64,000 bases of DNA, from assembly GCA_946965045.2 (NCBI GenBank), contig OX337232.1, forward strand, positions 868,001 through 932,000. The letters run 5' to 3'. The stretch is from Epithemia pelagica. Its lineage: Eukaryota > Protista > Bacillariophyta. The notes beneath the pieces are model-generated. The model saw only the letters and a list, made by a program, of their open reading frames with translations. It searched no databases and had not been told where the DNA came from. The position numbers were made by a program, and so were the translations under genes. Below, piece by piece: positions 4,858 through 57,170 of the stretch. Positions within the stretch are counted from its first letter, which is position 1; each line of letters begins with the position of its first letter.

Positions 4858-5139
4858 GGTTGATTGTTCTGGAAGCAGCAATGGATGGAAAAGGAGTAGT
4901 GTCGTTGTGAGGGATAACATATGGGATGTTGAACGATGAGGATGTTGGATGAAGATCTAGGGGTTGAGGTAATCCGTGACTGAACCCGACAAATCAAATG
5001 GTCGCAGAAACATACAATCATTTGTTCCGACAAATGATTGCATTGCATTCAAATGTCTTTTGCACTCAAATGACGTGTCACAGATCCGCCAGTTCTGCCC
5101 TTCCAACAACACCACCCTTATATGCGAACCGCCCGCTTA

Positions 5140-28123: not shown

Positions 28124-29042
28124 CGTTTACCGGCAAATTGACTGAACACCAAGTTGTTGTTGGTGTTTTGTTGTTGGTGGTGGTTCTTCTTTTTTCTTGA
28201 AACGACTATAGAAGACTAGGTACTCCTAGGCGGTAAGTTGGCACTTTCGTCTAGAGAGTACGACTAAGTCTATGCTACTACCGCGCGTTAGGTGGCCCTA
28301 CAATTTCTCGTAGTAGGAGTAGTATTAAAATTAAAGGGGCGGGGTGGAACTCCAAATTTCGCCCGGGCGAGAACAGACGGTTTACTGTAGAGCAAAGAGA
28401 CTCCCCGGGATTTTGCGGAGGAGGTCGGACCGCCTGCCACATTGCATGCGTAGCGGATTTAAAAATATTGAATTGAATAATTAGGTGTATTGACATTTGG
28501 AAAAACCGTTATAGCGGCAAAAGTGCCCCCGAAACAAAAAGATGGGGTATTTTGCGAAGGTTGTATGGGTGTCATGGACTGTTCTGGGGGTATGCTGTAC
28601 GACTATCAAGCAGAGTGATAAATTTTTTGAATATCGTGTCGCAATTATCCGGGTTTCCACTGAAAAGGATTACCCGGTATTTTTGATTATCTAGCGGGAA
28701 CTACGGACTACGGAGAGACTGCCTCCACCCCCAATATTAAAAAAGGATAGTCTATTTCAGCTGCCGCGGCACCGTAACCTTGGGCCGGACCCGCAAACGC
28801 GGTGTCTGTTACACGTCATTTGAGTGCAAAAGGCATTTGAGTGCAATGCGATCATTTGTCGGAACAAATGATTGCATGTTTGTGCATTCATTTGATTTGT
28901 CGGGTTCAGTCACGGATTGTCTCAATCCCTAGATCTTTATCCAACATCCTCATCGTTCAACATCCCGTTTCCTTACCTCTCATCACGACATCATCACATT
29001 ACTACCATTTCCTATCTATTGCTGATTGCAAAACAATCAACC

Positions 29043-30800
29043 ATGTCTCTTGCAAAGAAGAAGAAAAAGTCGTTAACCAAACATAAGAGGAACTTGGACC
29101 GCATACACCGGCCTCCAGGAATCATCCATGTTTATCAGAACGTTCACAATCCTGTCAAGCACAAGCTCTTTTGTTTTGGCACCGACAATTTCAATCTTCT
29201 GCTGACAGAGATGATTTCCCTCTGTATTCCGTCCGTGTTTCAAGCGATCTTTGTTCATCAATGCGTGCTATATATGAACAAACGTTACCCACATCCTACG
29301 GTGAGGTCATCTGTGCCAGATATCCCAATACTTATTCCACATCTTCAACAGGCTTCATCCGATTTAATAGAAAAATCCGGTGCTCTACGAATTCAAGAAG
29401 CTGTTTCTTTACAATTGACTCATGAACTACATGGTGCCTTTTTGGTCGACTGTGTATTATCACGGACGCACAAAAAGCCACGTATTCCAGAAGAGTCACC
29501 ATACTATGAATTGGTTCATAGAACACACACCTCAAGACAACTATGTTCGGATGAATATGGTGACATTTTCCGTACCGTCATAATTGTTTTCCCATACACG
29601 TCCGTTTTTTGGACGTCTGCTGCTTATGTGTCTGATCCAACCAAACTTTTCAGTGAGGTACAGAGTGGTATTGGTACCACCATTACTACTTCCTCTCTTG
29701 TACCTCTACCTCTTTCTTGGCTAAGGTTGGTATACAAAACGGGAGAACCTGCATTTGGAAGTTTTATCAAAAGAATCAACAAAGTGGTGTGGACAATCAA
29801 TTATGACACCTCCACAGAATGTCCCAAGGTTCCTCATAGCATACAGTTTCACGATGGCGACACCGACACTCCTTTACGTCCTCCCGATTTCTTTGGTACT
29901 AATATTATTACCAATGTCCCCGATAGACGGCTGTTCTACCGTGCCCAATTTGAACGTTCTGGGTCAAACCGTGTGAGATGCCGGCGATATGTTCCTCAAG
30001 CTCTTTATCAGAATCTACAAGATACGACAGCCTACATCCATGATCCCCGCTCCAAGGAAAGGAAGTTGTATGCCTTCCAAACAACATTCTTAGATGCCAA
30101 TAAGCGTCCCACTGGACAATCGAATATCGTCGTCTCTTTCTTGCGGTCTTCCGATACACTCTGCAATGACTTGACACAAGCTTCCAATGAGGTCGTTTCC
30201 GACAAATCGCTGCCAACACGTGGCAATGCTTGTCGAAATGCTGGTGACCATGGACAGATGAGTGGCTTTCGTGTGATGTTTGATCGATACAAACGAACTA
30301 ACAAGTGCATTTCCTTATCAGAAGACAACAAAAAACTAAAGAGCAGTGTCCGATCTGTCTGTCTCGGGATGGCCGGATTGGCTGAAAAACAATCAGGAAT
30401 TACAATCCCTGAAGAATTGGGTGGTTCTAGTGGGTTTTGTTCAAATATTGCGATAAGCGTGGATTTGGAAAACGCGGCGCATGTGGATGTAAATGACGCA
30501 ACAAATGTTTGTCTTGTGGCATTTGCAGAAACGACTCCGCATTCAACTACCGATTGGTACTTTGTTTTCCCCGACGTTTTGCTACGAGTCAATGGCCATT
30601 CCTACAATGGTCTGGTTGTCAAACTCACTCACGGAGTTACTATTTTGTTTGATGGCAGGCTTGTGCGTCATTGCACATCTCGGCATAAACGTTTCCAAAA
30701 TCCTGATGGTACCTTGGATCATACTGTTGGATGGTTTTTTGGAACATCACTTCGTCCTGTACTTGAATCTGGTCCATCATTGGCCACTACCACCCCATAA
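29043..30800 (+). CDS. Putative TET/JBP-like 2OG-Fe(II) dioxygenase (open frame, 14-aa internal deletion relative to A)
   Basis: ATG at 29043 within ORF 28917-30800. HxD at 30480 (AHVDVND), distal His at 30669 (VRHCTS), beta-rich WYFVFP...VKLTHG.TILFDG core. The canonical 2OG-binding Arg is not evident. Confidence 0.6.
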   Translation: MSLAKKKKKSLTKHKRNLDRIHRPPGIIHVYQNVHNPVKHKLFCFGTDNFNLLLTEMISLCIPSVFQAIFVHQCVLYMNKRYPHPTVRSSVPDIPILIPHLQQASSDLIEKSGALRIQEAVSLQLTHELHGAFLVDCVLSRTHKKPRIPEESPYYELVHRTHTSRQLCSDEYGDIFRTVIIVFPYTSVFWTSAAYVSDPTKLFSEVQSGIGTTITTSSLVPLPLSWLRLVYKTGEPAFGSFIKRINKVVWTINYDTSTECPKVPHSIQFHDGDTDTPLRPPDFFGTNIITNVPDRRLFYRAQFERSGSNRVRCRRYVPQALYQNLQDTTAYIHDPRSKERKLYAFQTTFLDANKRPTGQSNIVVSFLRSSDTLCNDLTQASNEVVSDKSLPTRGNACRNAGDHGQMSGFRVMFDRYKRTNKCISLSEDNKKLKSSVRSVCLGMAGLAEKQSGITIPEELGGSSGFCSNIAISVDLENAAHVDVNDATNVCLVAFAETTPHSTTDWYFVFPDVLLRVNGHSYNGLVVKLTHGVTILFDGRLVRHCTSRHKRFQNPDGTLDHTVGWFFGTSLRPVLESGPSLATTTP

Positions 30801-31238
30801 AGACGATGGTTCATGCATTGACTGTTGTTACACTTGCAGTGATTCGAACAAACAACCCCTGCTTTGCGGCATCCACAGTTGTCAGTCGAACATTGCAGTC
30901 CAAGTCTTTTGCAACTGCATTTTATCTTTCGCTTGTGTAGTGGTTGTTGTTTCTTTATCATTGAATGATGACTTCTGTATGTCACTCGATGTGCTTCCCG
31001 TACAGATATTATTGGATACTTACTGTAATCGAAAATGCTATTCAAAAGTTGTGCTTGTAGTGTCCTCCGTTCCAAACCCAGTGGTGATGATGGGTGCATA
31101 ATATTGTACCTGTCATGTGGGAACCAAGTGGATGTTCTGGCTTTCTTGTCCCCAATAATCCCCTCAGGGATTATTGCTCTTACGGATGGGTAGCTTCCTC
31201 TAGAAACCCCAATAACAATACACTGAATACCTAGTCTT
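30719..31238 (-). pseudogene. CXC-containing C-terminal transposase exon of element B (fragment)
   Basis: RLGIQCIVIGVSRGSYPS...CSCKRLGLQCSTDNCGCRKAGVVCSNHCKC, homologous to 46263-46955. Confidence 0.8.
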
Positions 31239-31968
31239 ACTACGTCAGTCAAAGTTCGTAAGACAACGACATACCTGCGTTTCGGTGGTTCTGGCAAGGT
31301 CTAGATCTGTTGGATCTGACATGACATGGTTTTGATGATGCTGGACTTTGGTGCAATCCGATTAATGAAGTGAAAAGGGTATCCGCTACTCCCTAGCGCT
31401 AACGCATGCTACCCCTAAAGTGCCGAGATCTGTTACTCAACATTTGGAGCAAAAAACATATGGAGCATTCAAAAAAACATTTGGAGCTTGTTTTTCAAAA
31501 AAACCCGCTGGCTTTCTAGCGTTACAAACCTCATCGGTTTTTTACTATCTAGCGTTTTATTTGTATATACTTGTCACACTGCTTCCTTATGTTCACTGTC
31601 CTATTTCATGAACAAACGACAATGGTGAGGTACCGGATTTGGTACTGTTATAGCGTAACCCAACCCTGTCGCTATGATGTTGCTTTTCGTCGTCTTTTCC
31701 AATGAGTTGATCCCAAATACACTGTCACAATATTTTCCCACCATCGTCACAATTTTTGTCCCCAACCCTCATTTTTTCCCCAACAATCAAAATACAGCCA
31801 GTGAGTCCCGTTATCTCATGCTCTATTTGTCGGAATTTTTGCTTCCACATGTAGTAGCATTGTCTCACAAATGATCGCAAATTTTCGACAAATCACTATT
31901 GCTTTCATTTGTAGACGACAAATAGATGCAACTGCATCTATTTGTCTCATTTCACTACAATATATAAC

Positions 31969-32096
31969 GAGGGTAGGCTGCTTAGGGCACGAGTGCCGTT
32001 ACAGCTGTTGGCGCACGAGTGCGTGTAGCTTCAGCTGCCGCACGAGTGCGCACAACAGCTGTAACGGCACGAGTGCCCTAAGCGTAGCCTGCCCTC
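31969..32096. repeat. 128-bp foldback with four GCACGAGTGC motifs
   Basis: The arms gagggtaggctgcttagggcac...gcg and cgc...gtgccctaagcgtagcctgccctc are imperfect reverse complements. Confidence 0.75.
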
Positions 32097-33193
32097 AGTT
32101 AAAAATGTAATTCCACAGTGTCGATACTTTATTCCAAAGTAGACGAGTGCTATTAGTCCCTACATCTAGTAGTCGCTATCCCTACTATCTACTACATAGT
32201 ATCCTTTATCCTCTGGGAGGAGGAGTACTTGCTTGGCATCAAGTTTTTCTTGGCATCAAATTCTCTGCGTGATGCGTGACACGTGACACGTGACACAATT
32301 CAAACAAGAGTTGTAATCCTCCAGCGTGATCACTACAGTTGTAACATGCTACAAATAGTTCTATACTCCGACGAAGCGGAAATTCTGCTCCGTGCTGGAG
32401 ATGCCGTGACACAACCCACAACCCACAACCCAGTCGACACGATCCTTAACCCCGAGTGCTAAACCCGTACATCCGTCCTAGGTTGAGCGCTTATGGTCCA
32501 TTCTTGAATTTAGACATGTCTAAGCACTAAGGATGCCTCTCTACTAGTCTCCTCTACTAGTAGATATACCGGTACCGGTGATCAAATTCTTCCAGTGCCA
32601 TTACACGTGATCAAGACTAAAAATTACTAGAATAATGACACTGGACGATTTTTACTTAGAGACCAGTGGCGACTACTAGAATAATAGCACGAGTCTACTT
32701 AGAAGAAAGTATCGTCATAGTGTAATTACAAATAGATGCACACTTCTCTACCTCATCATTACTTATGCCCCGAAGTTCTGAATCTGTCACGCTGTGACAC
32801 ACACGTGACACTGCTTGCTGTGTATTGCACCTCTTTTTTATCCTATCGCGATCATTTGTCTTTCGAAGTCCAAGTGATCGATCCACAATAACAGCCACAA
32901 CAACAGGTCGTCCTATTCTTCTTTCGGTATGTTTCTCAACCTGTCTTTGTGATTCTTGATGTCTTTCTAACACTATCTTACTTTACATTGACAGACGGCG
33001 TCAATTTAATCTTTTCCAATCCATCCTTGTGCAATTTCCATCCACCTTGCTCAGCATCGTAATTTCCACCGTGCCTTGTGTACTGTTTCATTGTTTCATC
33101 AACTTCTCGACGACTGTGACTTTTAGCAGCCTACTCTTTTTGCCTATAGTATCTCTAGTACTACTTCTACAGCGCCCCTACGGGTTGCTCACC

Positions 33194-35878
33194 ATGGTCA
33201 ATCGCCGCTCCCCCCGATCGTCTCCGGCAGCTTCGACCGCTGTCTCAGGTGCACCTCCTTCCCAGGCTACCGTGACCCAATTTTTCCAACCGGCAACCGC
33301 CGCCATGGCCACGGGCACTACTCCCCAGATCCGTACCCAAGCTTCCAATCCTGCAACGGACTCCCTCGCGGATACGACGACAGCGGCCAGCACTTCTACA
33401 GCTTCTATGACGTCGCGTTCCGCTCGGGCGTCGGGTCGCGGCCGTGCAACCATGGAGAATGCCCGTACTCCAGATCAAGTCTCCCTTCCGGACACTGCTT
33501 CTGAAGCTAACTCGGACTGGACCAGTGTTCCTTCGTCTACTGGTGGTTCTGGACGTGGTCGAGGCCGGGCTTCGGGTCGTGGCGGAAACCGAGGTCGAGG
33601 ACGAGGCCGTGGCAACGGTCACGGCCGACCTCCCTTGGACATTCCTGGGTCTCGTGGTGGTCGAGCAGCTGTCTTTCAAGCTTCTCCCGCCCGTCGCCGT
33701 CGTAATCGGCGGTCTCATCGACGATTGAATCGGTTGGCACCCCAGTCGGAAGAGTCCGCCCCCGACGACGTTCCGATGGAGGACGTATCTGTACCCAACC
33801 AGACTCAAGCTTCCCATGGCCAAACGACTGCAACAACTCCAGCGCCTCAGCCCCAAACTACTAGCGTGCCCACGGCTTCCCTGGCGGACGCCCCACCCGG
33901 GGCGGTGCAAGCGGCCCAGGCATCGGTCGAGTCGCCGCAACGCGGTTTTCAATCTACTTTAACCTCGGAAATTCAAGACTTGGCTCGTCAATCCCAGACT
34001 CAGCCGGCACCAGGTACAGAGGCAACCTCTACAAATGAACCAAGCCCGGATCGAGAGATGGCCGATGATCCTACGGTAGCACGCGACAACGCGACAGGGC
34101 CGCTGGTGCACATCTTTGTGAACCAGCCAGTCACCACTCCTGTTGCTACCACTCCGCAGTCTGGCACCACAACCTACGCCGCGGTTGCGTCTCGTCCAGC
34201 GGCTAGTATTCCCTCCAGACGTACACGGACTCCCATCGTTAACCCGTACCTACGTCCTCTGCGTCTCAATCCGGCCAGGCATGTGACAGCGCGTTACGAA
34301 ATTCGAGTTAATGTACCGCCATCTTCCCAGCCAGACGACGAGCTTCGCAGAGCTTTAGCTACCTACTTTGCTAAGCTCCAAGAGGTCGACGCCTCTGTGG
34401 TCCTACACCCGTGGGCCGAAGCCGACAATCGGGATAGACCGAACGGCTCACGACCGCTCCGAGCCATCTCTTCACCGAATGGGATCCCAGCGGATGTCAG
34501 TACTCTGAAAAAGTACTTCCCTCGGGCCGTCCCCCGTACGTCTGGCGGATTTGTGTATCCGTCCGTTTGGTTGGGTCATACTAAGCCCTTCTCGGATTTG
34601 GTCTCCGCCCTCTCGTGCTGGTTCCAGGCTGAACGACATGGCCTCTGGACTCGGCAGCTCCAATGCGAGACAACCTCGATCGTGGGCTGGGCTCTGTATT
34701 CGACCCAAACGATCCATGCCCCTACTCTTCGCATGCATCTTTCTGCCGAATTGGGCTTTGAAGTGGGAATCCGTTGGCGCACGATTAGCACCGGCCAATC
34801 GGGGCCCATTCCGGCAAACCAAATGGCTAAGGCCTTACATTTTGAGGTGGATCGACAGCATAAATCGGAAGCCAAGCGGCGGTTAGCGTCGATTTACGAC
34901 CGCAACGCGCAAGACTTTCCTCTTGGAATTAAGCTCCGCCTCGTCTGGCCACTGCATGACTTAATGAACATTAACACTCGGAACAAAGTGGCAGCTTTGC
35001 GATTACGGCAATTACAATTTTGCCAGTCCATGGTTAGCATGAGGACGTGGGAACTCCACGATCTGGACCTCGTGGATGACTCATCCGGCCTGTCTCTCCG
35101 GGACCGGCTCATGGACATCAAAAGTCATGCGGGACACCGTCTCTTTCATTCGGTCGATCCCAGCCATGTCGAGGGCGCCGTGCAGTTTTGTTTTCATCCG
35201 GATCGAGAGGATGAGGCCCGCACCATGATCTTGGCTCTTGTCCCCTACTTACGGTGGAAAGTGGCCTCTGCAGAGCAGGACTTGAATGATCGTGATCGGG
35301 AAATTCTGCTTTCGAGAGTGGTCTACCGCCATTTTAGTCCGGACGCTCTCGAACGAGCCGTTGGTGCAACGTGGAATCCTACTACGATGACGGTCGACTC
35401 ACCTGCCGACTCGTACAGCACTTGGGTTCATGACACGGGTGATGCGGAATTGGATTGCTCCAAAGTGGGATCTGCGGCTGCCTCCACCGTCCAGTTGATC
35501 GCGCCACAGAGTCTCGTTCGACCTCACGACGCTGCGGCCGATGCGGATAGTATTTCGACGCTGCCACAGGGAACCTCCATTGCCTCCACCGTGACTGGCG
35601 GTTCTGTCCCTTCTCAAACCAGTTCCAGAGCCAGCTTCCAACCTCCTCCTCATGCTGCGCCCAACCCCACCGTCACGACAGATTCAACGTCATCTCTAGC
35701 CTCTTCTGCCTCGCCCGACCAGGTCTTAGCACAACTGACCCTTGTCCTCCAAAACGTTACTCAAGTTCTCAATTCTAATCCCCACCATCCGGCCACTGCT
35801 GCGGTACGTGAGCAATTGTCTTCCCTGATGCCTTCCCCGACGGACGCGACACCCCCGCCGTCGGGGCAGCGTCATTAG
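33194..35878 (+). CDS. LINE ORF1 (894 aa; RG-rich and Thr/Ser/Pro-rich N-terminus, globular central region)
   Basis: First ATG inside the element, in frame with ORF 33029-35878. Open to TAG at 35878. Confidence 0.8.
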   Translation: MVNRRSPRSSPAASTAVSGAPPSQATVTQFFQPATAAMATGTTPQIRTQASNPATDSLADTTTAASTSTASMTSRSARASGRGRATMENARTPDQVSLPDTASEANSDWTSVPSSTGGSGRGRGRASGRGGNRGRGRGRGNGHGRPPLDIPGSRGGRAAVFQASPARRRRNRRSHRRLNRLAPQSEESAPDDVPMEDVSVPNQTQASHGQTTATTPAPQPQTTSVPTASLADAPPGAVQAAQASVESPQRGFQSTLTSEIQDLARQSQTQPAPGTEATSTNEPSPDREMADDPTVARDNATGPLVHIFVNQPVTTPVATTPQSGTTTYAAVASRPAASIPSRRTRTPIVNPYLRPLRLNPARHVTARYEIRVNVPPSSQPDDELRRALATYFAKLQEVDASVVLHPWAEADNRDRPNGSRPLRAISSPNGIPADVSTLKKYFPRAVPRTSGGFVYPSVWLGHTKPFSDLVSALSCWFQAERHGLWTRQLQCETTSIVGWALYSTQTIHAPTLRMHLSAELGFEVGIRWRTISTGQSGPIPANQMAKALHFEVDRQHKSEAKRRLASIYDRNAQDFPLGIKLRLVWPLHDLMNINTRNKVAALRLRQLQFCQSMVSMRTWELHDLDLVDDSSGLSLRDRLMDIKSHAGHRLFHSVDPSHVEGAVQFCFHPDREDEARTMILALVPYLRWKVASAEQDLNDRDREILLSRVVYRHFSPDALERAVGATWNPTTMTVDSPADSYSTWVHDTGDAELDCSKVGSAAASTVQLIAPQSLVRPHDAAADADSISTLPQGTSIASTVTGGSVPSQTSSRASFQPPPHAAPNPTVTTDSTSSLASSASPDQVLAQLTLVLQNVTQVLNSNPHHPATAAVREQLSSLMPSPTDATPPPSGQRH

Positions 35879-35879
35879 T

Positions 35880-38800
35880 TCCCTCGCCCCGGACCAGGAT
35901 GGTTTCTCGTCCCATCCTGCGTCCGCCGAGGGGCAGGCGAATCCGAGACAAGGGTCGAACCCCACCTGGTTTGAGCTGGCGTCTGATATCTCACCGGATG
36001 CCTTTTGGGGGGATGCTTTTCGACCACGGACACCGGATCATTGTCTTCGCGTCCTAGCTTTGAACACTTCCGGTCTCCCCACTTCTCCAAACCACGCGAA
36101 GTACCACGCATTGCAGGCTTTTATTCTTTCCAACGATATCGATATTCTTTGTCTTTCTGAGACCAACGTGGCGTGGCAACATCTTGACGAATCGGCACAT
36201 CTTTCACAAGTGACAAGGCCGTGGTTTCGGTCCTCTTTCTGTCGTACCGCCTGGTTCCGCCGTTTTCCTAGTCCCTCGGCGCGTCAGCCCGGAGGAGTAG
36301 CTATTTTGGTGCGCGACAGTCACAGCGGAAGAGTTATTGGGTCGCTGGGTGTGGGTACGCCTCCGGGGCGCTGGTGGCCAGACCATTGTGGTGGTTAGTG
36401 CCTACCGGCCAGTCGCCAACGCGAGGGATGTTTATTCGGTTTGGGCACAACAGCGAGTCCACTTCGACGGTCTCTCACCGGTGCGTCTGACGGACCCGCG
36501 ACAAGCGTTTCTAGAGGATCTGACGTCCTTCCTTTCTGAAATGCGCACTGCGGCGGACCATCTCGTGGTCTGTATGGACGCGAACGAAGACCTGACGGCG
36601 ATATCCAACCCCGTCACCGCGGCTTTTGCTTCTCTACACATGCGTGATGCAATGTTTGCTCGGCACGATCCTACCGCCGCTCCGCCCACTCACCAGCGAG
36701 GATCCCATCCAATTGACGGTATCTTTCTCTCCTCTGTCCTCCCCGCGTCCCCGTGCGGTTATCTCCCGTTCGGATCCGCTGTGGGGGATCATCGACCACT
36801 ATGGTTGGATCTCGATGTGAGCTCCATCTTTCGAACAGAGTCGGTAAACACTAGCCCACTGACAGCCCGCCGGTTGCAATGTTCGGACCCACGCGTCGTC
36901 GAACGTTATAACAAGAAACTCCGGGCCTTCTACGATCTCCATAATATTGCAGGGCGCACCTTTCGGTTAGAACAGGAAGTGGACTCGGGTCAGTGGAATC
37001 AGTCTCTCGCCGCTGAATGGGAGGCCCTAGATCGGCTCCGCGTGGAAGGAATTCGACAGGCTGAAGCTGGTTGTCGTCGTCTGAGGACAGGCAACCTCCC
37101 GTGGTCCCCCACTCTCAGTTGCGCTCTCCTTCGTCATCGTTTTTGGGACCGGCTCTGGGCCCGCTCACTGGGCAATCGGATAAGTTGGTCTTACTTGGTT
37201 CGCCTTGCTCAGAAGGCCGACCTCGTTATTCCATCGACTCTCCTTCCGCATGAGATCCAACAAGAGCGAGAGGCAGCGTGGGCCGAGTATAAACGGGTTC
37301 GAAAAGAGGCCGAGGTCTATCGCACCTCTTACCTCGCTCAACTGGCTCAAGCACGAGCGGACGCCGGTCTGGAAGCTCAGTCCTCTGCGTTAAAAGTCAT
37401 GGCCACCAGGGAACGACAACGTCGGGATGCGCGATTACTACGATCGATCCTTCGCCCTACTCACAGACGTGGCCTGGACCGGATCGAAGTTCCAGTGGGT
37501 GATGGCGAATGGGTAGATGGGGAATGGAACGGCCAGTGGATGGAAGTGACCTCTAGGACGGCCATTGAAAAAGGATGCCTTACAGAGAATGATCGGCGTT
37601 TCCGGCAGGCCACTGGGACGGACTTACTCCAGTCGCCCGTCATTCAGGTCCTGGGGCCCACCGGTTGTGCACCGGCAGCCACGGAATTACTACGCACCGG
37701 CGAGGTCCCGTCCTCCATCGAATCCCTCATTTCTGGACCGGCATGCGAATACCTTCGACAACATCATATCCCCAAAGCGATCCTGGCTGCTCCGCCGGCT
37801 GTTCCGGACTTTCGATCAGCTGCATACTCTCAGGGATGGTCCCGAATGAAAGAACACACGGCGTCAGGACGATCTGGGGTGCACTTCGGGCACTTCATTG
37901 CCCAGGCCCGGGAGCCCCTGCTGTGTTCTGTTGACGCTGCTTTGGCCCGTATCCCCACATGCACTGGCTATGTGCCGAGCCGTTGGACCCAAGGATTAAA
38001 CGTTATGCTGGAAAAAAAGGCCGGCGTAGCTAAGGTCTCAAAGCTCCGTACCATCTTGCTGTACGAGGCGGACTTCAATCAGAACAACAAGGCTCTTGGG
38101 CGGTCTATGATGGCTTTCGCGGAACGGCACCACCTCCTGGCCCCGGAGCAATATGGCAGCCGCAAGTATCACAGCGCCATATATCAAGGCCTCAACAAAG
38201 TCCTCACTTTTGATTTGTTTCGGCAACTACGCCAAGCCGGGGCACTTTGCTCCAACGATGCAAAGTCGTGCTATGACCGCATTGGTCACACGGCTGCTGG
38301 CTTAGCGATGCGACGCTGTGGAGTCCCTGTCCCGTTCGTCGAAGCCTCCTTGCGGCCCATTCAGGCGTTGAGGCACTACATTCGGACCGTGTACGGCGAC
38401 TCTGCCATTTTTTTTGATGCCCATGGACAAGAGATTCCCATCCAAGGCATCGGCCAAGGCAACGGCGGAGGGCCCGCCATCTGGGCAGTTGTGAGCACGC
38501 CTATTTTCAACGCGATGCGTCAGCGTGGATTTGGTATCTTCCTACGTTTACCTATTACGGGCGATCGGTACCTCTTTGTTGGGTATGCGTTTGTGGACGA
38601 CACAGACCTGGTTGTGAACCTGCCCGAGTCCGATGCGGCCGTTTCACCTGACGAGCGAGTGGCTCGAGTCGCGACCCGAATGCAGCAGAGTGTTACTTTT
38701 TGGGAGGCCGCCCTACGAGCCTCGGGGGGAGCTCTAGTACCACAAAAATGCCATTGGTATTTAATGGACTATACTTGGATCAATGGCAAATGGACGATGG

Positions 38801-41685
38801 TGCAACCCTCGGCCACGGACTTTCCTCTACGGGTACGTTCGCCCTCGGGGCGTTTGGTCGAAATAGAACAACTTTCTCCCCATGAGGCCCGCCGCACGCT
38901 GGGAATCCGGGCCGCCCCGGATGGAAATATGGATGCTGAGTTCGATTTCCTGAGCAAGCGCATTCAGCAGTGGACCGACCTCATACAAACACGCCGGTTG
39001 CCTCACCACCTGGTTTGGACGGCCTTACACACGGGAATTCTTAAAACAGTGGCCTATCCTCTCCCGGCCTCGACCTTCTCGGAGGACCAGTGTCGGCGGT
39101 TAATGCACCCTCTCTTACAAGTCGGCTTGAGCCGGTCGCATATTGTCCGAAGCATGCCTCGTGCAGCTGTCCATGGACCTCTTGAGCGAGGGGGATTTGC
39201 TGTTCCCAACCTGTACACGGAACAGGGTATCGCTCATGTCAGGACGCTCCTTCAATTCTTTCAGTCCCCTTCTATCACTGGATATCTCCTGCGGGCCTCG
39301 TACCAAGCCCTTCAGTTGGAATTGGGTCTCCCTGGACAGGTTCTGTCGCGACCCTTTGCAATATGGCTGAAGTGTGTGACGCCCACCTGGCTGTCTCACA
39401 CATGGGAGTTTTGCAGCCGCTACAAAATTTCGATCCCGGCTTTGCCGATTCCGACTGTGGCCCCACTCCGATGCGGCGATTGTTGGCTCATGGAGGCTTT
39501 CTTCGCGGCGGGTTTTCGATCTCCAACCAGGTTGGCTGCCCTCAACTGGTGCAGGCTTACTCTACATGCGGCCTCCTTATCGGACATTGCATCCGCCGAC
39601 AGCAAACACATCCTGCCGGCCGCGTGGACAGGCCGGGATGGACCGTGTGGGCATCGACACCATTGGAAGTGGCCCCGTACCCCACCAGCCTTGGAGTTGG
39701 ACTGGACGGGCTGGAGAGCAGCGCTCTCGGTGACCTTTGGAGTGGATCCGCAATTTGGACGCCTCAACAGGGCGCTTGGATCCTGGCACGCCCCAGCAGC
39801 ATTCGGCGCCTGCGTTCTGTACTCGCGCCGTTTCCATCGCTTATACTGCCCTGAGATCGAGACGGATAGCGCGGACCTACCTACTCGTTGGTTCGTCTTT
39901 CAGGAGTGTCCCACCTAGTCTGGCCGACCCCGTTTTTCCTTCAGTGGTTTCTCGCAGAGCTTCGCTGCCGTGTGTCTGGCCGCACCACTCCATGTTGCCG
40001 ATATATCTGTTCGGCTACAGGACCCTGCTTTCTTGGCTCGGACCGTCAAACTTCTTCAGTTTCACGCTCAACCGCTAGAGATACCCCTTCTCCCGCCTAT
40101 TTGTCCTCCCCCGACAGCTGTGGACATTGCCTGTCGTGCATTACCGACGGACTGGCACCACTGGTTCGTGCCACCCACACAGGCGACCATTGAACAATTG
40201 CTCGACGCCCTGCATAGGGGTGCTATCGAAGCAGTGTCTGATGGGTCCTCTCGAGCTGGAGTGGACGGCACGTGTGCTTGGTGTCTTGCGGCGTCTCCCT
40301 CTCAGCTGGAGTTGGTGTCGGCTGGAGTGCGCGTCCCTGGCCCGGCGGAGAGCCAACACTCTTTCAGAAGCGAATTGTATGGATTGTATAACATTGCCTT
40401 GTTTATACGTGGTTTGGTCCGAGTTGGTCATGGAAGAGGAGGACAAATCACGTTTGCCACTGACAGTACCAGTGTGCTGGGACGCCTTCTCACATCGTCA
40501 AGGCCGGCAACGGTCTCTGATCAATGCTGGGACATGATCTCAGCGGTGCAGGACCTTCTCCTATCTATGCCGTCGGTCCGTTGGCATGGCCGGCATGTAC
40601 GGGGTCACCAAGACCGTGGTGTTGCGCGGGAGGACTTAGACAGGTGGGCACTTCGTAACGTGCTCATGGATGAACGCGCCACTCAGGTGTATGAACTCAT
40701 CCCACCAGATTCTCTGCCCCCTTCCCCGCTCGGCCAAATCCCCGCCGTGTGTGTTGCCGGCTCCGTCGTGGCCTGCGACTTTACGGAACGACTCCGTCTG
40801 CACGTGAATGGCCCCGTGTTGGAGGAGCATCTGGAGCAGCATGGTAAATTTGGCGCGGGGTCTTCGGATCTCGTCCAATGGGAAGCTTATCACATCGCGC
40901 TCCGATCGCAACCTCTCAACAGACGGCATTGGATACTGAAGTCTACTATGAACCGCTCCGCTGTGGGCGTCGAAATGGTCCGCCGTCGTCAGTGGCGTAC
41001 TGCGTCGTGCCCTCGATGTGGTTTCCCTTCTGAAACCGCCATCCATGTGTTTCTGTGCCCGCATCAGGAAGTCACGACTCTTTGGGATGATGCCCTCCTC
41101 CGTCTGGATCGTTGGTTTGCTCAAAAATCTACACACCCTTCGTTAGCTGCTTATATCCTTTCTGCTCTCCGGGCCTGGCGCCATGGGGCGCCACCTCCCG
41201 CCCTCGCCTCGACGGTTCCGCATTTGTCAGCCGCCGCCGCCGCCCAGCGCCTCCTTGGCTGGGATGCGGCGTTCGAAGGCCGTTGGTCTTCTCTGTGGGC
41301 CTCGGTTCAAGACGAGTACTTTCGCTTTATCGGTAAGCGGAATACGGGGCGTCGGTGGTTGTCTGCCCTCATTGCGTTCTTGTGGAACACGGCCTGGGAC
41401 TTGTGGGAACACCGCAATGGACACCAGGTCCGGCGGGCCCAAGCACAAGAGCAGGCATTACTTCACGAGGCTATCCGCCAAGAGTATAGTCGTGGCAACT
41501 TGGGCTTGGACGCACCCGTCCAGTCTCTTCTCCGCCGACCTCTGGAGTTCCGCCTGAGGGACACTCCTGGTTACCAACGCCTGTTTCTCGTTCGGATCCA
41601 GGCTGCCCGTCGAAGGCGCCCATATCGCCTTCTCGCGGAACAACGACGATTGTTCCGACGTTACTTTCACCCTTCATCCCGATGA
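35880..41685 (+). pseudogene. LINE ORF2: APE endonuclease, RT, RNase H; frameshift near 36345 and in-frame TAG at 39916-39918
   Basis: APE LNTSG / DILCLSETN / MDANE / DHRPL. RT QYGSR, NDAKSCYD, QGNG, FVDD. RNase H VSDGS, RSELYG, TDS, HVRGHQD, MDERA. Confidence 0.9.
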
Positions 41686-42060
41686 GGGTATCGTCATTTC
41701 TACATGTTGCATTCTTTTCTTCACGTTTCTCTCCACATCCGGTCCCGGTTTTTCTCGTGTTTCATTGGGTCGACTACGGCCATGGTATGAGGTCTCATCC
41801 ATGCGTGACGCAGCGACGTAAAAGCCCTTGGCAATCTAGCGTTTTAACCAAAGATTAATCTATGAGTTGCATTTGCATTCATTGTTTCATCAAGAAATCA
41901 AGACGATACAAAATTTGTCCGGCGCAAGAGACACTGTGGTGCCTTGGCTGGCTTGTGGTGTGAGCAACACTGTGGTAGCTCAACCAGCAAATTTTGTTCC
42001 TCAAGGAATTTTGCCAGGAGTTGTTTGAAACGGTACTCAGACGTGGAATGGAATGATACG

Positions 42061-45000
42061 ATGCCGGTGAACAAAAAGAAAACAAAGACCATCCAAAAGA
42101 ACAAGCAAAATGCCTCGTTTTCCACCAATGACCTGGCGGTATTCCGCCAATTTGTCGACATCATGAAGCCTATGCTATCAGGAGAAGCCACCAATTGTCA
42201 TAATCAAAATGACTCATCCGATGAATCCGATAGCAATTTTTCTTCATCTTACTCGGCTTCATCGGATCCTCGGGAAAATGATCCATCACCGACACGCGTT
42301 ACACGCTCCACCAAGGAATCACCCACGAACGATGAAAAGTTGTCGAAGAACAGCAGCTCCAAAGGACGTCGACGATTTACAAGGTCAACAGCAACAAGCA
42401 CCTTGACAAAACACGCTGGAACTACACATAGTTCGACAAAACGACGTTCTTCGGTGGTGAATACACGCACAAAAAAGAAATCCAAAGGCACAACACAATC
42501 TTCCTCAGTGGCTGCCCTCGCCCCAAATACAGACCCTCCTACAGAAATACCTCCGACGGAAAATCAGGTGATCCCAATCTAGGTGGATGGAAATTTGGAC
42601 AAGGAACATTGGCATAGATTCAATCTCCGAGTTTTTGGCAATTCCTTCGGTGATGTTTCAAACTTAGGCACCACAAGCACCTCTGCCAGTAATACAAAGT
42701 TCATGTCACGATCTCAGTTAAATCACGAGATTTACATCAAGAAACATTGGAAGACTGGTGATCCTAATGCTCAAGGTCCAGTTTACGATGGTGCACCAGA
42801 TCCCAGAATACCACGAGGATTTCGTAAGCTATACCCACAAGGACGAAGTAATAAACTGCTACGAAGAGAAGTTAGAGCCATTCGATTGGACAATGGCGCA
42901 AACGAATACGCTTTGTTTGACCGTGACCATAGAGTTGTCGCTGCTGAAGATGTTTTCGATATAATTCGTGAGAAACACATCGAGACAGGCCACAAGCTAT
43001 CAGAAGAGACAACCTACAACGCCATAAAAAATGACTACCATAACATAACGGTTAGACAGGTCAAAGAGTTCATCAACGGATGCCCACAGTGCATGCTCCA
43101 ACATTGACCCCAACTGCCCCACAAGGGAGCTTCTAAACCGATCAGATCATTTGCCTTTCGCGATCGATACCAAGCGGACCTGATCGAAATGGACGAGGAA
43201 GGACAAACTGGTGCACGAGATATCTACGGAGTCGAGATGCACTACATTCTGTCCTGCAAGGACCACTTTTCGCAATATGTTATGCTTGCAGCTGTACCAA
43301 GCAAGAGTCCAAGATATGTTGCTCATCATTTGGGACTATTCTTTGGATTAATAGGATTCCCGGCCGTATACCAAAGTGACAATGGTCCAGAGGTCAGTGG
43401 AAACGAAATCATCGCGATGATTTTACAGAACAATCCACATATTGACACCTGCAATGGACGACCAAGAACACCAAGGGAACAAGGTTCAGTTGAACACAAA
43501 CAAAGGGATCAGGAACACCGTCCAAGCCTTCGTGGCAGAAGAGGGGGCTAGAGGCAATCATGATTGCAATTGGACAATGGTTTTGGGCAGAACAATGAGT
43601 GCTCTGAATGGTGCCTCCAGACGTACCACATCGAAAGCGTTTTCGTCTTATGAGACTGTGTTTGGAACCAAATTTTTTGCACCTACGACTGAGGTGCGTG
43701 GATACTCCAAAAATGAACTTGGAAGAGGAAGGACTGCGGTAGAAAGGTGTCTTAACTCTGGTAGCCAGGCTCTGACAGAGAAGTATGCAATAATGGGTGA
43801 GCTTACACGAGAGGACATTCCCCAGCTTCGGGATCTTGCCACTCCACGAGTAATTTATCTCATGGACCTCTACCAACGGACACATGATGAAGGTCCAGAT
43901 GCCAAGTTTATGACGGCTCAAAAATCCGATTGGTCTCTTGTCCCACCAGAACTACGGCCATTTCAACTCCCACAAGATGTTGACAATGAGGGAGAGCCAA
44001 ATGTGTTACAGCAATCTCACGAGCCATCTCATCTTCCAGACACGTCCATTGTTCCTCCCGAATTCTTGCCAATCGAGCCACCAAATGGCACACAACAAGG
44101 TGGGAAACCGAGCAGCATTGACAAAACAGACAAATTGTGCCCTGATGATGAATGCAAACCAAGTGCACTCGATTTGTCCCTTGTATGTAAACAAGTTGTT
44201 CCTCATGGGGACGCCATGGATCAGGATGGAAACATGAAGCCTAGTAAAATAGAGAATGCTTTGATGCTTTGGGAGGTGAAGCTCAAAAACCTCAAACGGG
44301 TGCAAGGAATCGGGGACAAAAAGAAGAAAACCTCGTTCCAAGAGGTGGAAAAACAAGGTGATGGACCCATGCTACAAGTCCACAAAACAGTGCCCAAAGC
44401 GGACAAGGCAAAGCCACAACTCAACAAGCTGGATCAACAAGTGGACAAGTCGGTAGACAAATTTCAAGAATCTGTGGACACGTCCTTACAACAAGCCATC
44501 AAGTCGATGCAAGAAGGAGGCAAGTCGTCGCAGCAAGCCAACAAGTCGATGCAAAGGGAGGACAAGTCGGTGCAAAAAATCAACAAGTCGATGCAAAACG
44601 CTGACAAATCGTTGCAAATGGGGGACAAGTCCATGCAAAAAACCGACAAGTCGATGCAAAATGATGACAAATCGTTGCGACCGGAGGACAAGTCCGTGTA
44701 AAAAACCGACAAGTCGATGCAAAATGATGACAAATCATTGCGACCAGTGGACAAGTCCATGCAAAAAACCAACAGTGCAAAAACCAACAAGTCGATGCAA
44801 AATGATGACAACTCATTGCGACCGGTGGACAAGTCCGCGGAAAAAACCAACAAGTCAATGCAACAGGTCAACGAGTCATTGCAAAAGGGGGACAGGTCCT
44901 CGCAACGTGTCTCAATGCAAGAAGTGGACAACCTCCCATTGCCACCATTGGACATTTTCGTGCACAAATTTAACAAACCGATGCAAAATTTCGACAAATC

Positions 45001-46955
45001 GATACAAAAAATAGACAAATCAATGCAACAAGTTGGCAAGTCGATGCATTTCAAGACCAACATTGAGGAACCAATTACAGAATCAGATCAAGAAGTAATG
45101 ATTGTTGATGGTCCCGTCGGGAAGGATATTAAGGAACGCCTTCAGATGAGCGAGCGTAATCCATTGCTCACAACGGTACTAGATGTGCTTACAGAATCAG
45201 AGGACTACAAGAAGGCACATCCCAAGGACAAAATCGTACAGGCTCGAGTGGAATGTATTTCTTGTCCTTTGATGGCACACCAAGATCATGTATCACTTGA
45301 TATTCCATCAAAGCATTGCCTTCGTCATTATTTTGGTCCTTCCTCAACTGCCTGCTGGTTGCCCGACATTCTGATCCATTCTTTTGGTTTGCTATGTACT
45401 CATAGAAACCACCACGACAACATGATTTTCTACGATGTTGCCCAGATTGTGAGCGCAAAAGATATGGAGTCTTTAAAAGATGCTGTTGGGAGACCCTCAA
45501 GTCTCCTTCAAGACAATCCCAAAGTCAATGAAATAATTGTATTGGCAACTGGGAATAGACACTACGTTGTACTCCAACTTTTGGTTGAGCAGAAACATTG
45601 TGTCGTATACGATGGAATGCGAACAACAAATATGAGGGGATGGTCTGATGTCACCAAAATGCTATTTTGGAAGTTTGGCATCCACAAGATGTCGAACATG
45701 GATGCTGTGTCTGTCGTTGAAAAACTGGACACATTGGCTCCAAATAGAAATTGGAGCATCTCACAGGACCCCAAGATTTGTGGTTTACAACACGATAGTC
45801 ACTCTTGTGGCCCCATAGCTATGCTCATCATTACAAGTCTTTTTCACACAGCCAAGGATAAAGGAAGCATGCATCTCTCTCAATTTCATCCTGGAAACAT
45901 GAACAAACAACAGTGGCGAGAAAATGTCTCGAATCTTTTCAAGACATATATCGGTTTTGCATGGGGGAATCTATATTCCCAAAAGATTATTCCACTGGAA
46001 CAGCGAAGGAATATCTACGACTTCCATGTGGGGGAACAATGCAACAACTTTTTGGATGAAAAAAGCATTACCCGCAAGAAAGCGCCTTCCAATTCTGAAC
46101 AACCTTCCAATTCTGAAGCCCCCACAGAAGATCAGAGCACCACTGTTCCCCTCCGTCGCTCTGCTCGCAATCTTTCGAAAAGGTGAGTATCGTTGTTCAG
46201 ACCCTTACTCATACATAAATAATAGTTTGTTCTGATCAAGAAGAAGTGATGATTTTGAGATTGTGGATGATGTACAGCTACGTATGGAAGAACGCAACTC
46301 GAAGACTGAACAAAGGCGTAATGATCAGTCTTACCAGGCTAGCAAAATGATCCATATGAACCAAAGGCCGTGGTTTTCAGTTAACATCGGAGACCCAGTG
46401 GCTTTTTTCCCCGATGGAAGAGACAGAGCGACCCACTCAAGGCTAGGTATTCATTGCCTTGTCATTGGAGTTTCTAGAGGAAGCTATCCTTCTATAAGAG
46501 TAATGATCCCAGAAGGAATTATTGGAGACAAGAAATCGAGAACGTCAACTTGGTTCCCACATGACAGATATAATGTGATGCATCCGTCATCTCCCTTGGG
46601 AACAGAACGTAGGAAAATACAGACTCAGATTTTGAATCAGACCTTTGATTCTAGAAGCTACCCTATAATTCCTGTACGAGAAGCACATAGAGTGACATAT
46701 AGCAGTCAACGATCAATCAAGAAGAAACAACCTATGCTACAAAATCGAAAAGTAAAATGCAGTTGTAAAAGACTTGGAATACAATGTTCCACAGATAATT
46801 GCGGATGTCGAAAAGCGGGGGTCGTGTGTTCACATCACTGCAAATGTCTTGATGGCCAATGCATGAACAGGCGAATTCATGGGACAATATTGCCTGGCAA
46901 TGATCCGAATTCCATGACAGGGAGTGACGTTCCAAAGAACCGCCCCACAGTATGA
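42061..46955 (+). pseudogene. A2 transposase polyprotein (H2C2 zinc finger, rve DDE, heptad repeats, Ulp1, intron 46183-46240, CXC); stops at 42580, 43105 and 44699, frameshift near 43497
   Basis: KHIETGH...CPQC; QADLIE, QSDNGPE, QGSVE; Ulp1 and CXC as in A1 and A3. Confidence 0.85.
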
Positions 46956-48666
46956 TTGCTGCTTCCATCACGAGATTTTGAACGTTCATGTCGAAATGTG
47001 CAATGGCGCACAACCCCTCCGTCAAACAATATGGTTATGCCATGTGTAAGTTTGATAACCAGACCATTGTACGAACGGCCATTGACTCGGAGCAAAATAT
47101 CTGGAAATACAAAGTACCAATCTGTAGTGGAATGTGGCGTAGTCTCTGCAAATGTAACAATACACACACTGGCATCGTTGACATCAACGTGTGACGCATT
47201 TTCCAAATCAACACTAATCATCCATTCGCACCACCAAATTCCTCAGGAATCGTAATGCCAGATTGCTTACGCAAACTCTGAAAAAGAGATCGCACACCTG
47301 GGTATTGTTGGTCAGCCAATTCAGCAACTCCAAGACATACGGACTTGACATAATCTTTTAGCTTGTTGTTGTCTGGCAATGAAATACACTTGTTCGTCCG
47401 TTTATAGCGATCAAACATGACACCATACCCATTCATTTGTCCATAATCACCTGCATTTCGACGCGCATTCCCACGTGATGATAATGTCGTATCTCTAACG
47501 ACCTCGTTCAAAGCTAGTGACAAGTCTTGGTACAAGTTGTCGGAAGACTTCAAGAAAGATACGACAATGTTTGATTGGCCTGTTGGGCGTTTATTTGTAT
47601 CCAATATTGTGGTCTGAAAGGCATAAATCATTCTCTCTTTTGAACGTGGATCGTGTACATAGGCTGTGGAATCGTGCAAATTCTGATAAAGAGCTTGAGG
47701 AACATAACGATGACATCGGACCTTGTTGGAACGTGACCGTTCAAATAGGGCCCGATAAAAAAGACGTCTGTTACACACTCCTGTAATAATGTTAGTACCA
47801 AAATAATCAGGAGGGAGCAAAGGAGTGTCGTCATCAGCGTCATGAAACTGAATACTGTGAACAACCTTGGGATTCTTCATGCCCGTGATGTGATTGACCG
47901 TCCACACTTGGTTGATTTTCTTGATAAAGCTTCCCAATGCAGGCTGGCCTGTTTTGTAAACTATCCGGAGCCACGAAATTGGCAGAGGTACAAGGGATGA
48001 AGTAGTGATTGTGCTCCCAATACCACTCTGTACCTCACTGAAAATTCTCGTTGGATCAGAAACAAAGGCAGAAGTCCAAAAAACAGATGTGTACGGGAAT
48101 ATGATAATAAGTGTACGGAAAATATCGTCGAACTGATCGGAACAGAGTTCTCTGGAGGTACGGGTTCTATGAACCAATTCGTAATAGGGGGACTCATCTG
48201 GAATGCGTGGCTTTTTGTGTGTACGGGACAATACGCAGTCAACCAAGAAGGCATCATGCAATTCATGAGTCAATTGCAGGGATACAGCTTCTTGAATTCG
48301 GAGAGAATGTTGACCTGGTATGGAGCTGGATGTTGATTGTAAATCAGATAGAGCCTGCCGAATATGGGGAATCAAGATGATGGGGATATCAGGTACAGAT
48401 GATCTGACAGATGGGTGTGGAAAATGCTGGTTCAGTTGTTGTGTGCATTGACGCACAAAGATGACTTGGAGGAAGGATGGTAGACAGAGGGATACCATCT
48501 CTGTCAGAAGAAGATTGAAATTGTCCGTGTCAAAACAAAACAGTTCACGTTTGACAGGGTTGCGAACACTCTGGTACACATGAATGATTCCTGGAGGGCG
48601 GTTTATTCGGTTGGGGTTTCTCTTATGTTTGATCAAAGGCTTCGTCTTCTTGTTAGCCTGAGACAT
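46877..48666 (-). pseudogene. Putative TET/JBP-like dioxygenase, copy A2 (one frameshift at ~47220)
   Basis: ORF 47218-48729 (ATG 48666) plus 46877-47221. About 16 nt shorter than B just before ISVDLEN. Confidence 0.6.
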
Positions 48667-48948
48667 GGTTGATTGTTCTGGAAGCAGCAATGGATGGAAA
48701 AGGAGTAGTGTCGCTGTGAGGGATAACATATAGGATGTTGAACGATGAGGATGTTGGATGAAGATCTAGGGGTTGAGGTTATCCGTGACTGAACCCGACA
48801 AATCAAATGGTCGCAGAAACATACAATCATTTGTTCCGACAAATGATTGCATTGCATTCAAATGTCTTTTGCACTCAAATGACGTGTAACAGATCCGCCA
48901 GTTCTGCCCTTCCAACAACACCACCCTTATATGCGAACCGCCCGCTTA

Positions 48949-49376: not shown

Positions 49377-49726
49377 TGTACCTGTCATGTGGGAACCAAG
49401 TGGATGTTCTGGCTTTCTTGTCCCCAATAATCCCCTCAGGGATTATTACTCTTACGGATGGGTAGCTTCCTCTAGAAACCCCAATAACAATACACTGAAT
49501 ACCAAGTCTTACTACGTCAGTCAAAGTTCGTAAGACAACGACATACCTGCGTTTCGGTGGTTCTGGCAAGGTCTAGATCTGTTGGATCTGACATGACATG
49601 GTTTTGATGATGCTGGACTTTGGTGCAATCCGATTAATGAAGTGAAAAGGGTATCCCCTACTCCCTAGCGCTAACGCATGCTTCCCCTAAAGTGCCGAGA
49701 TCTGTTACTCAACATTTGGAGCAAAA

Positions 49727-49966
49727 TGAATAAAAACTGACGGCCAGACGCAATATACGGCTTGCAACAATCAAACTATCAGAAATTATGGTAACTAAAC
49801 TAGGGGTGCCCTTTGGGGGCAAATCGCTCACGTAGGGGCCAAACAGCGACCACGGTACCCACTAGCGAATACGCAACTAGGGGCCGGGCGATGCCAGGCG
49901 ATGCGTAGCGAGGCATGGCGAGGCCCTTCGTAGGTTACAAAGGGGGCGCCCGTGATTATTTATTCA
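49727..49966 (-). repeat. 3-prime LTR of Copia-2
   Basis: Appears identical to 56783-57022. Confidence 0.92.
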
Positions 49967-50090
49967 GTCCCCGCCAACAAAATCGGGGTGGGAAACTTCG
50001 TTAAGTTCGTCATGTCAGCAGAGGCCGGTCCAGTACGTCGGACTATTCTTCAAAAGGGGCGATCCCATTTTGGATCTAAAAAGGGGTCTG

Positions 50091-56363: not shown

Positions 56364-56782
56364 GGTTCAAGGGTCGGATAAAGGGTAGGAGGGTAGTAGA
56401 AGGTCAAACGGATGGCAAGGGAAGGCTTGTTCTTGTGCAGAAATTTGCAATTGTGATGAGAGGAGCGAATTTCTGTGAGCCAACAATCTGCGAGTGAATC
56501 GGCGAGTAGTCGTCCGGCGATTCCGCGAGCGAGCGAGCTGGCGATCGGCGAATCCGCGAGTTGGCGATGGACTGTCCACGTGTACGAGCACGTGCACGGT
56601 ACGTTGTGCAGTCGCAAGTCACAAATTAGCGAGTGGGTCCCACAGTGACAGAAACAAGTCACAGAGATGACACAAGCGAGCGAGTGACGAAGCCGCTTAG
56701 CGCGAACACCTCTTGAGCGTTGATCAGGCGCTTGCCGTCCGGCGAACAGTGGGGGAACAACAGACAGATGGGTCTGATAAAC

Positions 56783-57022
56783 TGAATAAAAACTGACGGC
56801 CAGACGCAATATACGGCTTGCAACAATCAAACTATCAGAAATTATGGTAACTAAACTAGGGGTGCCCTTTGGGGGCAAATCGCTCACGTAGGGGCCAAAC
56901 AGCGACCACGGTACCCACTAGCGAATACGCAACTAGGGGCCGGGCGATGCCAGGCGATGCGTAGCGAGGCATGGCGAGGCCCTTCGTAGGTTACAAAGGG
57001 GGCGCCCGTGATTATTTATTCA
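56783..57022 (-). repeat. 5-prime LTR of Copia-2 (shared with an upstream tandem remnant)
   Basis: Appears identical to 49727-49966. Confidence 0.92.
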
Positions 57023-57170
57023 GTCCCCGCAAACAAAATCGGGGTGGGAAACTTCGTTTAGTTCGTCATGTCAGCAGAGGCCGGTCCAGTACGTCGGACT
57101 ATTCTTCAAAAGGGGCGATCCCATTTTGAATCTAAAAAGGGGTCTGCTACCACATGATACGTTGGGCCAG
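57023..57170 (-). mobile_element. Remnant of a second tandem Copia-2 copy (PPT plus pol 3-prime end)
   Basis: Matches 49967-50114 with three substitutions. Confidence 0.85.

Follow-up and report, generated by a model that had tools for sequence, protein, structure and literature searches.

A decayed Ginger1-like transposon in the diatom Epithemia pelagica, from a family that carries a TET/JBP-like dioxygenase gene with a putative role against methylation silencing

Can a cut-and-paste transposon of a diatom carry its own DNA dioxygenase, and what might such an enzyme do for its carrier? The question is raised by a 64,000-nucleotide stretch of the Epithemia pelagica genome (assembly GCA_946965045.2, contig OX337232.1, positions 868,001 to 932,000 of the forward strand; hereafter the window), in which an initial annotation described a Ginger-like integrase transposon with a putative TET/JBP-type gene. 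Self-comparison of the window resolved a family, F1, with three near-identical copies (A, B and C), and a diverged fourth piece, F2. We consider it probable on balance that copy B represents a Ginger1-like cut-and-paste transposon in a decayed state, and that its family carries a gene of the TET/JBP family whose product would oxidize 5-methylcytosine (5mC) and so counter silencing.

Among the copies in the window, only copy B has both ends (Table 1). Aligned with each other, they form an imperfect terminal inverted repeat (TIR) of ~40 bp. The TGTTAC...GTAACA termini and the GATC target-site duplication (TSD) reported initially can be read directly, and three independent lines of evidence support the F1 termini as real. 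F1 and F2 are 92% identical across the terminal 161 bp, and their similarity ceases at 28805/48893. Two further loci of the same assembly, L003 and L004, contain the same element within unrelated flanks; there the end reads ...GAGTAACA (...GTAACA), and the TSDs are GATT/GATT at L003 and GATT/GAGT at L004. Contigs from three public DNA runs of the organism diverge into unrelated sequence at 28805-28807 and at 31428. The transposase-side start, TGTTACYCAA, is common to F1, L003, L004 and another locus of this genome, L001, and copy B is collinear with L001 and L004 across its whole own length. Copy B extends over 17,461 bp because a long interspersed nuclear element (LINE) and an insert of ~760 bp sit inside it. 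Its own sequence amounts to ~7.9 kb without both insertions, and the unit of ~8.7 kb given initially is what is left when the LINE alone is removed; the figure fits neither the full interval nor the element freed of both.

From its reading frames, the family transposase is predicted to be one long protein made up of an H2C2 zinc finger, a retrovirus-type DDE core, a heptad-repeat linker, an Ulp1-like cysteine protease and, behind a short intron, a cysteine-rich CXC domain. A profile of four subfamilies matched the integrases of mouse mammary tumour virus (MMTV), Rous sarcoma virus (RSV) and human immunodeficiency virus in the PDB, with MMTV and RSV at 3e-6 (best) to 1e-2; the aligned positions include the CPxC zinc finger, the first D and the DNG and GxVE motifs. 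Pfam returned rve at 1.2e-3, Integrase_H2C2 at 2.4e-3 to 6e-3 and TCR/CXC at 4.4e-3 to 7.9e-3 for the copies in the window. In locus L002 of this genome, the H2C2 match (8e-6) is above the cut-off, with rve at 2e-4, and Peptidase_C48 was found at 5.8e-4 in L002 and 2.1e-3 in L004. The protease region has four invariant residues (H282, D299, Q358 and C364), with H-D and Q-C spacings of 17 and 6 residues that are presumably those of yeast Ulp1. A PDB profile search with the Ulp1 region gave no match. The rve-type transposase with Ulp1 and CXC domains of the initial annotation is thus borne out by weak Pfam matches, the integrase profile, the invariant protease spacing and, for CXC, the weak TCR matches. 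The element has no reverse transcriptase of its own; the sole one belongs to the nested LINE.

In every subfamily, the CXC open reading frame (ORF) begins 70-76 nucleotides past the Ulp1 ORF. This gap opens with AG/GTGAGT (AG/TAAGT in L002), a donor that is kept in four subfamilies, and conservation of the downstream frame sets in at its very first residue. Given the constant gap, the conserved donor and the conserved frame, we read CXC as the last transposase exon. That CXC is a separate gene was considered and rejected, as a conserved GT-AG intron connects it to the Ulp1 exon. The 21-bp repeats that encode the heptads lie at 629-1054, 44437-45069 and 60349-60838, and their number in copies A and B differs from that in copy C. 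The heptad array also occurs, at other lengths, in L001 and L002.

Ginger1 transposons, described from animals, have a 4-bp TSD at CCGG/CCGT, TGTNR...YNACA termini and TIRs of ~40-270 bp; their transposase combines H2C2, a DDE integrase core and a C-terminal Ulp1 or OTU domain, with few introns and no reverse transcriptase (PMC2836005; Bao, Kapitonov and Jurka 2010). The F1 family is likened to Ginger1 by features, namely a 4-bp TSD, TGTNR termini, short TIRs, H2C2-DDE followed by Ulp1, an intron and the lack of a reverse transcriptase, and the Ginger-like assignment made at the outset agrees with each of those examined. Unlike Ginger1, the F1 family has an extra heptad-repeat linker, a C-terminal CXC exon, a second gene and a diatom host. 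The Ulp1 domain had been taken for a second countermeasure acting at the level of chromatin. This idea is not supported, Ulp1 being a standard domain of Ginger1 (PMC2836005).

The second gene encodes ~590-600 residues and is located between the transposase gene and one terminus, in the opposite orientation. We refer to it as the TET gene. This genome has the arrangement of terminus, TET gene and then convergent CXC-Ulp1-integrase in six or more diverged subfamilies (F1, F2, L001, L002, L003/L004 and L036). It is also seen in three metagenome contigs (L005-L007), in which the TET core is ~34% identical and a convergent CXC exon is reached before the contig ends. Every copy that keeps the transposase 3' end has the TET gene (F1 in all three copies, F2, L001, L002, L003, L004, L036 and L005-L007). 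The locus scan for TET homologues used an alignment of 15 sequences, and most of the contigs that it returned were too short for neighbouring genes to be seen. The integrase by itself led to three loci: a complete one, with the TET gene, and two from which the entire 3' half is missing and which therefore do not count as complete elements without the gene. As the gene is present in all 3'-complete copies across subfamilies, a one-off capture is not supported, and the view of TET as regular cargo of the family, put forward initially, gains by these loci.

An alternative would place the dioxygenase gene outside the transposon, adjoining the insertions by chance or through target preference. The three F1 copies in the window share flanks and count as one event, so they do little to oppose this. 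We nonetheless hold it to be highly improbable: in every subfamily the gene stands between terminus and transposase, the flanks of L003 and L004 are unrelated but their element sequence is identical from a point ~200 bp upstream of the gene, and TET divergence is collinear with that of the transposase. TET identity between subfamilies of the genome is 47-77%, and TET, CXC and Ulp1 rank the subfamilies alike by divergence (F1, F2 and L001 closest, then L004, then L002). The dN/dS ratio (nonsynonymous to synonymous divergence) for TET between F1 and F2 is 0.10; in the other pairs synonymous sites (pS) are saturated, with pN of 0.20-0.37. As judged from these comparisons, the TET gene and the transposase have diverged in step, with purifying selection acting on the former.

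The only intact TET ORF of the window is in F2. It contains the HxD motif within AAHVDVND, as well as LTHG...DGRLVRHCTS and LTHGVTILFDGRLVRHCTS. In the contigs from the three DNA runs, F2 has 37 extra letters at 30385-30389 and no other difference over 2.3 kb. Allowing for a 5-nucleotide overlap of the aligned pieces, the extra segment is 42 nucleotides, or 14 codons, and it encodes a peptide present in the relative P0001. The version of F2 without the 14 codons would be either an allele or an assembly slip. One could suppose that this gene has been exapted by the host and that its link to mobility is historical only. F2 has lost the transposase and one end and yet keeps a full TET ORF, its read depth (~218) is like that of neighbouring unique sequence (~200-250), and the TET gene is under strong purifying selection, all of which would suit a host gene. 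However, the selection signal derives from the comparison of mobile subfamilies rather than from the F2 locus alone, near-identical TET genes are found inside complete elements at L003, L004 and L036, and F2 in the window lacks 14 codons that the read contigs contain. We regard exaptation as rather improbable, and return to the TET gene as transposon cargo.

A word-indexed search with the TET-like ORF found five relatives with 45-96% identity, all from one ENA assembly. A full hidden Markov model search extended the family to at least 667 representatives at E <= 1e-3, with a common core of ~330 residues. For structure prediction we used the core of P0001 (residues 250-598) with an alignment of 71 sequences; a model from six sequences reached a predicted local distance difference test score (pLDDT) of only 35.8 and was unusable. 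The core model has a pLDDT of 91.2 and a predicted template modelling score of 0.90. Foldseek against the PDB placed TET2 first (4.7e-11) and filled ranks 1-26 with TET2, CMD1, CcTet and NgTET1, with AlkB next at ~1e-5. The VIA-align Z scores are 20.4 for TET2 (285 residues), 16.7 for both CcTet and CMD1 and 15.7 for NgTET1, within a TET/JBP range that goes down to 15.2; ALKBH3 and FTO, at 12.2, are a step below the TET/JBP structures. Matched Swiss-Prot AlphaFold models were JBP1, JBP2, NgTet1 and TET1-3, and the AlphaFold DB clusters and ESM Atlas returned 'Tet-like 2OG-Fe(II) oxygenase' (PF20515) and Tet_JBP clusters. By predicted fold, the C-terminal 350 residues are a TET/JBP-family Fe(II)/2-oxoglutarate dioxygenase. 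The identity proposed initially is thereby upheld at the level of the model, the core falling in the TET/JBP branch of the double-stranded beta-helix (DSBH), ahead of AlkB and small-molecule oxygenases.

H245, D247 and D250 are invariant in all 71 relatives, and downstream residues are conserved in most (H294 in 63, R303 in 60, R306 in 61 and H307 in 70). H294 is 49 residues past HxD, which we take to be the spacing of compact family members. The two arginines after the distal histidine, R303 and R306, are candidates for 2-oxoglutarate binding, as suggested by conservation. The iron-ligand motif residues are all found in F2, and the F1 copies retain them despite their frameshifts. The protein is like TET2, CcTet, CMD1, NgTET1 and JBP1/2 in a fold that goes beyond the bare DSBH and in having HxD with a downstream His and Arg; it is unlike them in its 11-15% identity, in its N-terminal region of ~250 residues and in that no Cys-rich or CXXC module was recognized. 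An Atlas search with the N-terminal 250 residues gave no informative match.

One relative, P0130 (1602 residues), has DEAD and Helicase_C domains (721-1032) ahead of its TET-like core (1290-1591), an architecture loosely like that of JBP2. It is the only helicase fusion among the long relatives scanned for fused domains, and may be a chimeric gene model.

What would the enzyme do? We propose that it would oxidize 5mC in or near the element, and that this would counteract the methylation of transposons in diatoms. The proposal is based on the fold, with TET2 as best match, on the conserved, putatively cofactor-binding residues, on the escape from methylation silencing proposed for fungal transposons that carry TET genes (PMC12730594), and on the reported confinement of 5mC to transposons in diatoms (PMC12344493). 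By analogy with the fungal elements, the anti-silencing mechanism is plausible but unproven. The enzyme might instead be a TET/JBP member with other chemistry, such as thymine hydroxylation as in JBP or the addition of a vitamin-C-derived group as in CMD1, and would then mark the DNA of the element rather than erase 5mC, for example in transposition control or self-recognition. The substrate is not fixed by fold alone, JBP1 and JBP2 lead the Swiss-Prot structure list, CMD1 scores the same as CcTet, and NgTET1 acts on thymine too, according to a passage of PMC12344493 that cites this activity. We think this alternative unlikely: TET2 is clearly ahead of all other structural matches, the two conserved arginines fit the use of 2-oxoglutarate, and 5mC, which is reportedly confined to transposons in diatoms, would be the obvious substrate. 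Oxidation of 5mC thus stays our preferred function.

A number of observations weigh against the reading of F1 as a Ginger1-like family with a TET/JBP gene. The TET-like protein of the window has no Pfam family even at E 10, only two of the 71 relatives have Pfam matches (PF20515 and PF12851), both below threshold, and PDB sequence searches with the protein gave no match. By the sequence criterion of Pfam, it is not a recognized TET/JBP member. Both H294 and H307 are candidates for the distal iron ligand. The rve, Ulp1 and CXC matches each score under the Pfam gathering threshold in the window's own copies. The target is GATC or GATT, unlike the CCGG/CCGT of Ginger1. Lastly, all F1 copies of the window are broken, and they were multiplied by segmental duplication, not by transposition.

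TET-carrying DNA transposons of fungi were reportedly described by Iyer et al. in 2014. At least ten lineages of such fungal elements are now recognized, among KDZ (Kyakuja, Dileera, Zisupton), Plavaka, hAT, Harbinger/PHISTA, IS3EU, EnSpm, ESTA and Helitron (Kojima 2025, PMC12730594). Like these, the F1 family has a separate TET gene beside the transposase, within TIR and TSD bounds, that is kept across diverged families. Unlike them, it has a diatom (stramenopile) host, a Ginger1-like carrier outside the lineages listed in PMC12730594, and a dioxygenase whose divergence puts it beyond the reach of the Pfam Tet_JBP and 2OG-FeII_Oxy_6 models. Our literature search found TET-carrying transposons described only for fungi, with no report for diatoms or other stramenopiles; PMC12730594 mentions neither Ginger nor diatoms. 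What is new here is the carrier superfamily, the host group and the diverged enzyme family; the TET-on-transposon system itself is known.

Another diatom, Fragilaria crotonensis, has relatives of the TET-like family. At L030 (JAKSYS010000354.1, 11419-14749), the TET homologue P0127 is convergent with ORFs that have weak MULE, ZSWIM RNase-H-like and SWIM matches, in the order expected of a Mutator transposase. The same dioxygenase family may here have a carrier of Mutator type. At L037 of this species, no recognizable transposase adjoins the TET homologue.

A broader and tentative idea, which we rate as possible rather than probable, is that diatom transposons of at least two superfamilies (Ginger-like here, Mutator-like in Fragilaria crotonensis) took up a single diverged TET/JBP family as a lasting counter-defence that co-evolves and erases 5mC on the element, and that an arms race between methylation and demethylase arose independently in stramenopiles and fungi. 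If true, a transposon-borne 5mC oxidase would be a direct counter-silencing device in an ecologically major algal group, and the TET counter-silencing strategy would have a second, independent origin. At least 667 representatives are missed by current Pfam models, which extends the known TET/JBP sequence space.

Table 1. Features of the window, with coordinates counted from its first nucleotide
Feature	Coordinates	Strand	Remarks
F1 copy B	31431..48891	+	17,461 bp including two nested insertions; ends read directly
Left TSD copy, GATC	31427..31430		GATC/TGTTAC read at 31427-31436
Right TSD copy, GATC	48892..48895		GTAACA/GATC read at 48886-48895
Left imperfect TIR, transposase side	31431..31470	+	TGTTACTCAACATTTGGAGC...
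Right imperfect TIR, TET side	48852..48891	-	reverse complement TGTTACACGTCATTTGAGTGC...
Predicted transposase, N-terminal part (H2C2 zinc finger and DDE integrase core)	41971..43741	+	
Predicted transposase, linker of 21-bp (7-residue, DKSMQ-like) tandem repeats	44437..45069	+	in-frame TAA at 44699-44701
Predicted transposase, Ulp1-like cysteine protease exon	44720..46183	+	ends in AG/GTGAGT splice donor
Predicted transposase, last exon with CXC (tesmin/TSO1-like) cysteine cluster	46263..46952	+	
F1 TET/JBP-like pseudogene in copy B	46895..48666	-	frameshift at ~47220; conserved DGR changed to DGG (R303G)
F2 TET/JBP-like gene	29043..30800	+	intact 585-codon ORF
F2, truncated copy of diverged subfamily	28807..31238	+	one terminus, TET gene and part of CXC exon kept
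F1 copy A	1..5084	+	clipped by window start; TET with two frameshifts
F1 copy C	49703..64000	+	continues past window end; left flank same as copy B
Nested LINE (non-LTR retrotransposon)	33103..41876	+	8,774 bp, 57% GC, three ORFs
Nested ~760-bp non-autonomous insertion	31965..32726		~8-bp duplication; missing from copy C
LTR (long terminal repeat) retrotransposon nested in copy C	49723..57170		392-bp LTRs, 99% identical; minus-strand ORFs

As read from its sequence, the window holds no functional copy of the element: F1 has broken transposases and frameshifted TET genes, and F2 is a fragment that lacks the transposase and the other end. The convergent ORF of ~590 residues with HxD...H ligands, ascribed initially to the interval of copy B, has a homologue there; the intact ORF is outside it, in the truncated F2, and the gene inside the interval is a pseudogene with a frameshift and a DGG substitution. 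The first of these lesions is common to all three F1 TET copies, to which A and C add another frameshift. The N-terminal part of the transposase is in four pieces in copy B, with two breaks beyond those of copy C, in which one frameshift directly follows the catalytic E and the heptad repeats contain an in-frame TAA. As to the mobility claimed for the element, the ends and TSDs at L003 and L004 speak for the family, and the copies of the window itself are dead and segmentally duplicated, for which reason the window adds little beyond the other copies of the genome.

Copies A, B and C are mutually 98-99.6% identical. Copies B and C have a common left flank (31103-31430 = 49375-49702) and copies A and B a common right flank (up to 5560/49376). 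From the shared flanks we infer that the three copies are one insertion multiplied by segmental duplication, and three independent insertions are rejected. The duplicated block is 31103-49374 against 49375 onward, and 1-5560 against 43809-49376, with a start-to-start spacing that is now 18,272 bp. The duplication is older than the LINE, 760-bp and LTR-element insertions, and the similarity of copy A ends exactly at the duplication junction. In copy C, 242 bp of the F1 subterminal region (31455-31696 in copy B) were lost at the junction with the LTR element.

F2 is inverted relative to F1 and has 76% nucleotide identity to the right-hand 2.4 kb of F1. Insertion of F1 into F2 was considered and rejected: the similarity of F2 to the family ceases at 31238, and another repeat (31232-31368) lies between F2 and F1. 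This repeat of 137 nucleotides is dispersed (26114-26250, 31232-31368 and 49504-49640; 96-97% identical) and cuts F2 short at ~31238. At its edges, 31237 and 31368, the read contigs have other flanks.

The LINE is full-length, has a GC content of 57%, against ~44% in the surrounding sequence, and is bounded by a 16-bp TSD, TTCATTGTTTCATCAA, at 33087-33102 and 41877-41892; the empty site is found in copy C at 57790-57805. Its ORFs encode an ORF1 protein of ~900 residues, an endonuclease/reverse transcriptase of 1193 residues and an RNase H-like protein of 571 residues. By eye, endonuclease-like and reverse-transcriptase motifs (FVDD) can be recognized in the second and an RNase H-like motif in the third, and an Atlas feature search returned RVT_1 and Exo_endo_phos clusters. 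The reverse transcriptase has no Pfam match even at E 5, so that standard domain annotation misses this LINE clade. The ~760-bp insert is probably a non-autonomous DNA element and contains an internal inverted repeat of 31 nucleotides (31980-32010 and 32053-32083). Elsewhere in the window, a 222-bp unit is present as a tandem duplicate at 25367-25810, with 98% identity.

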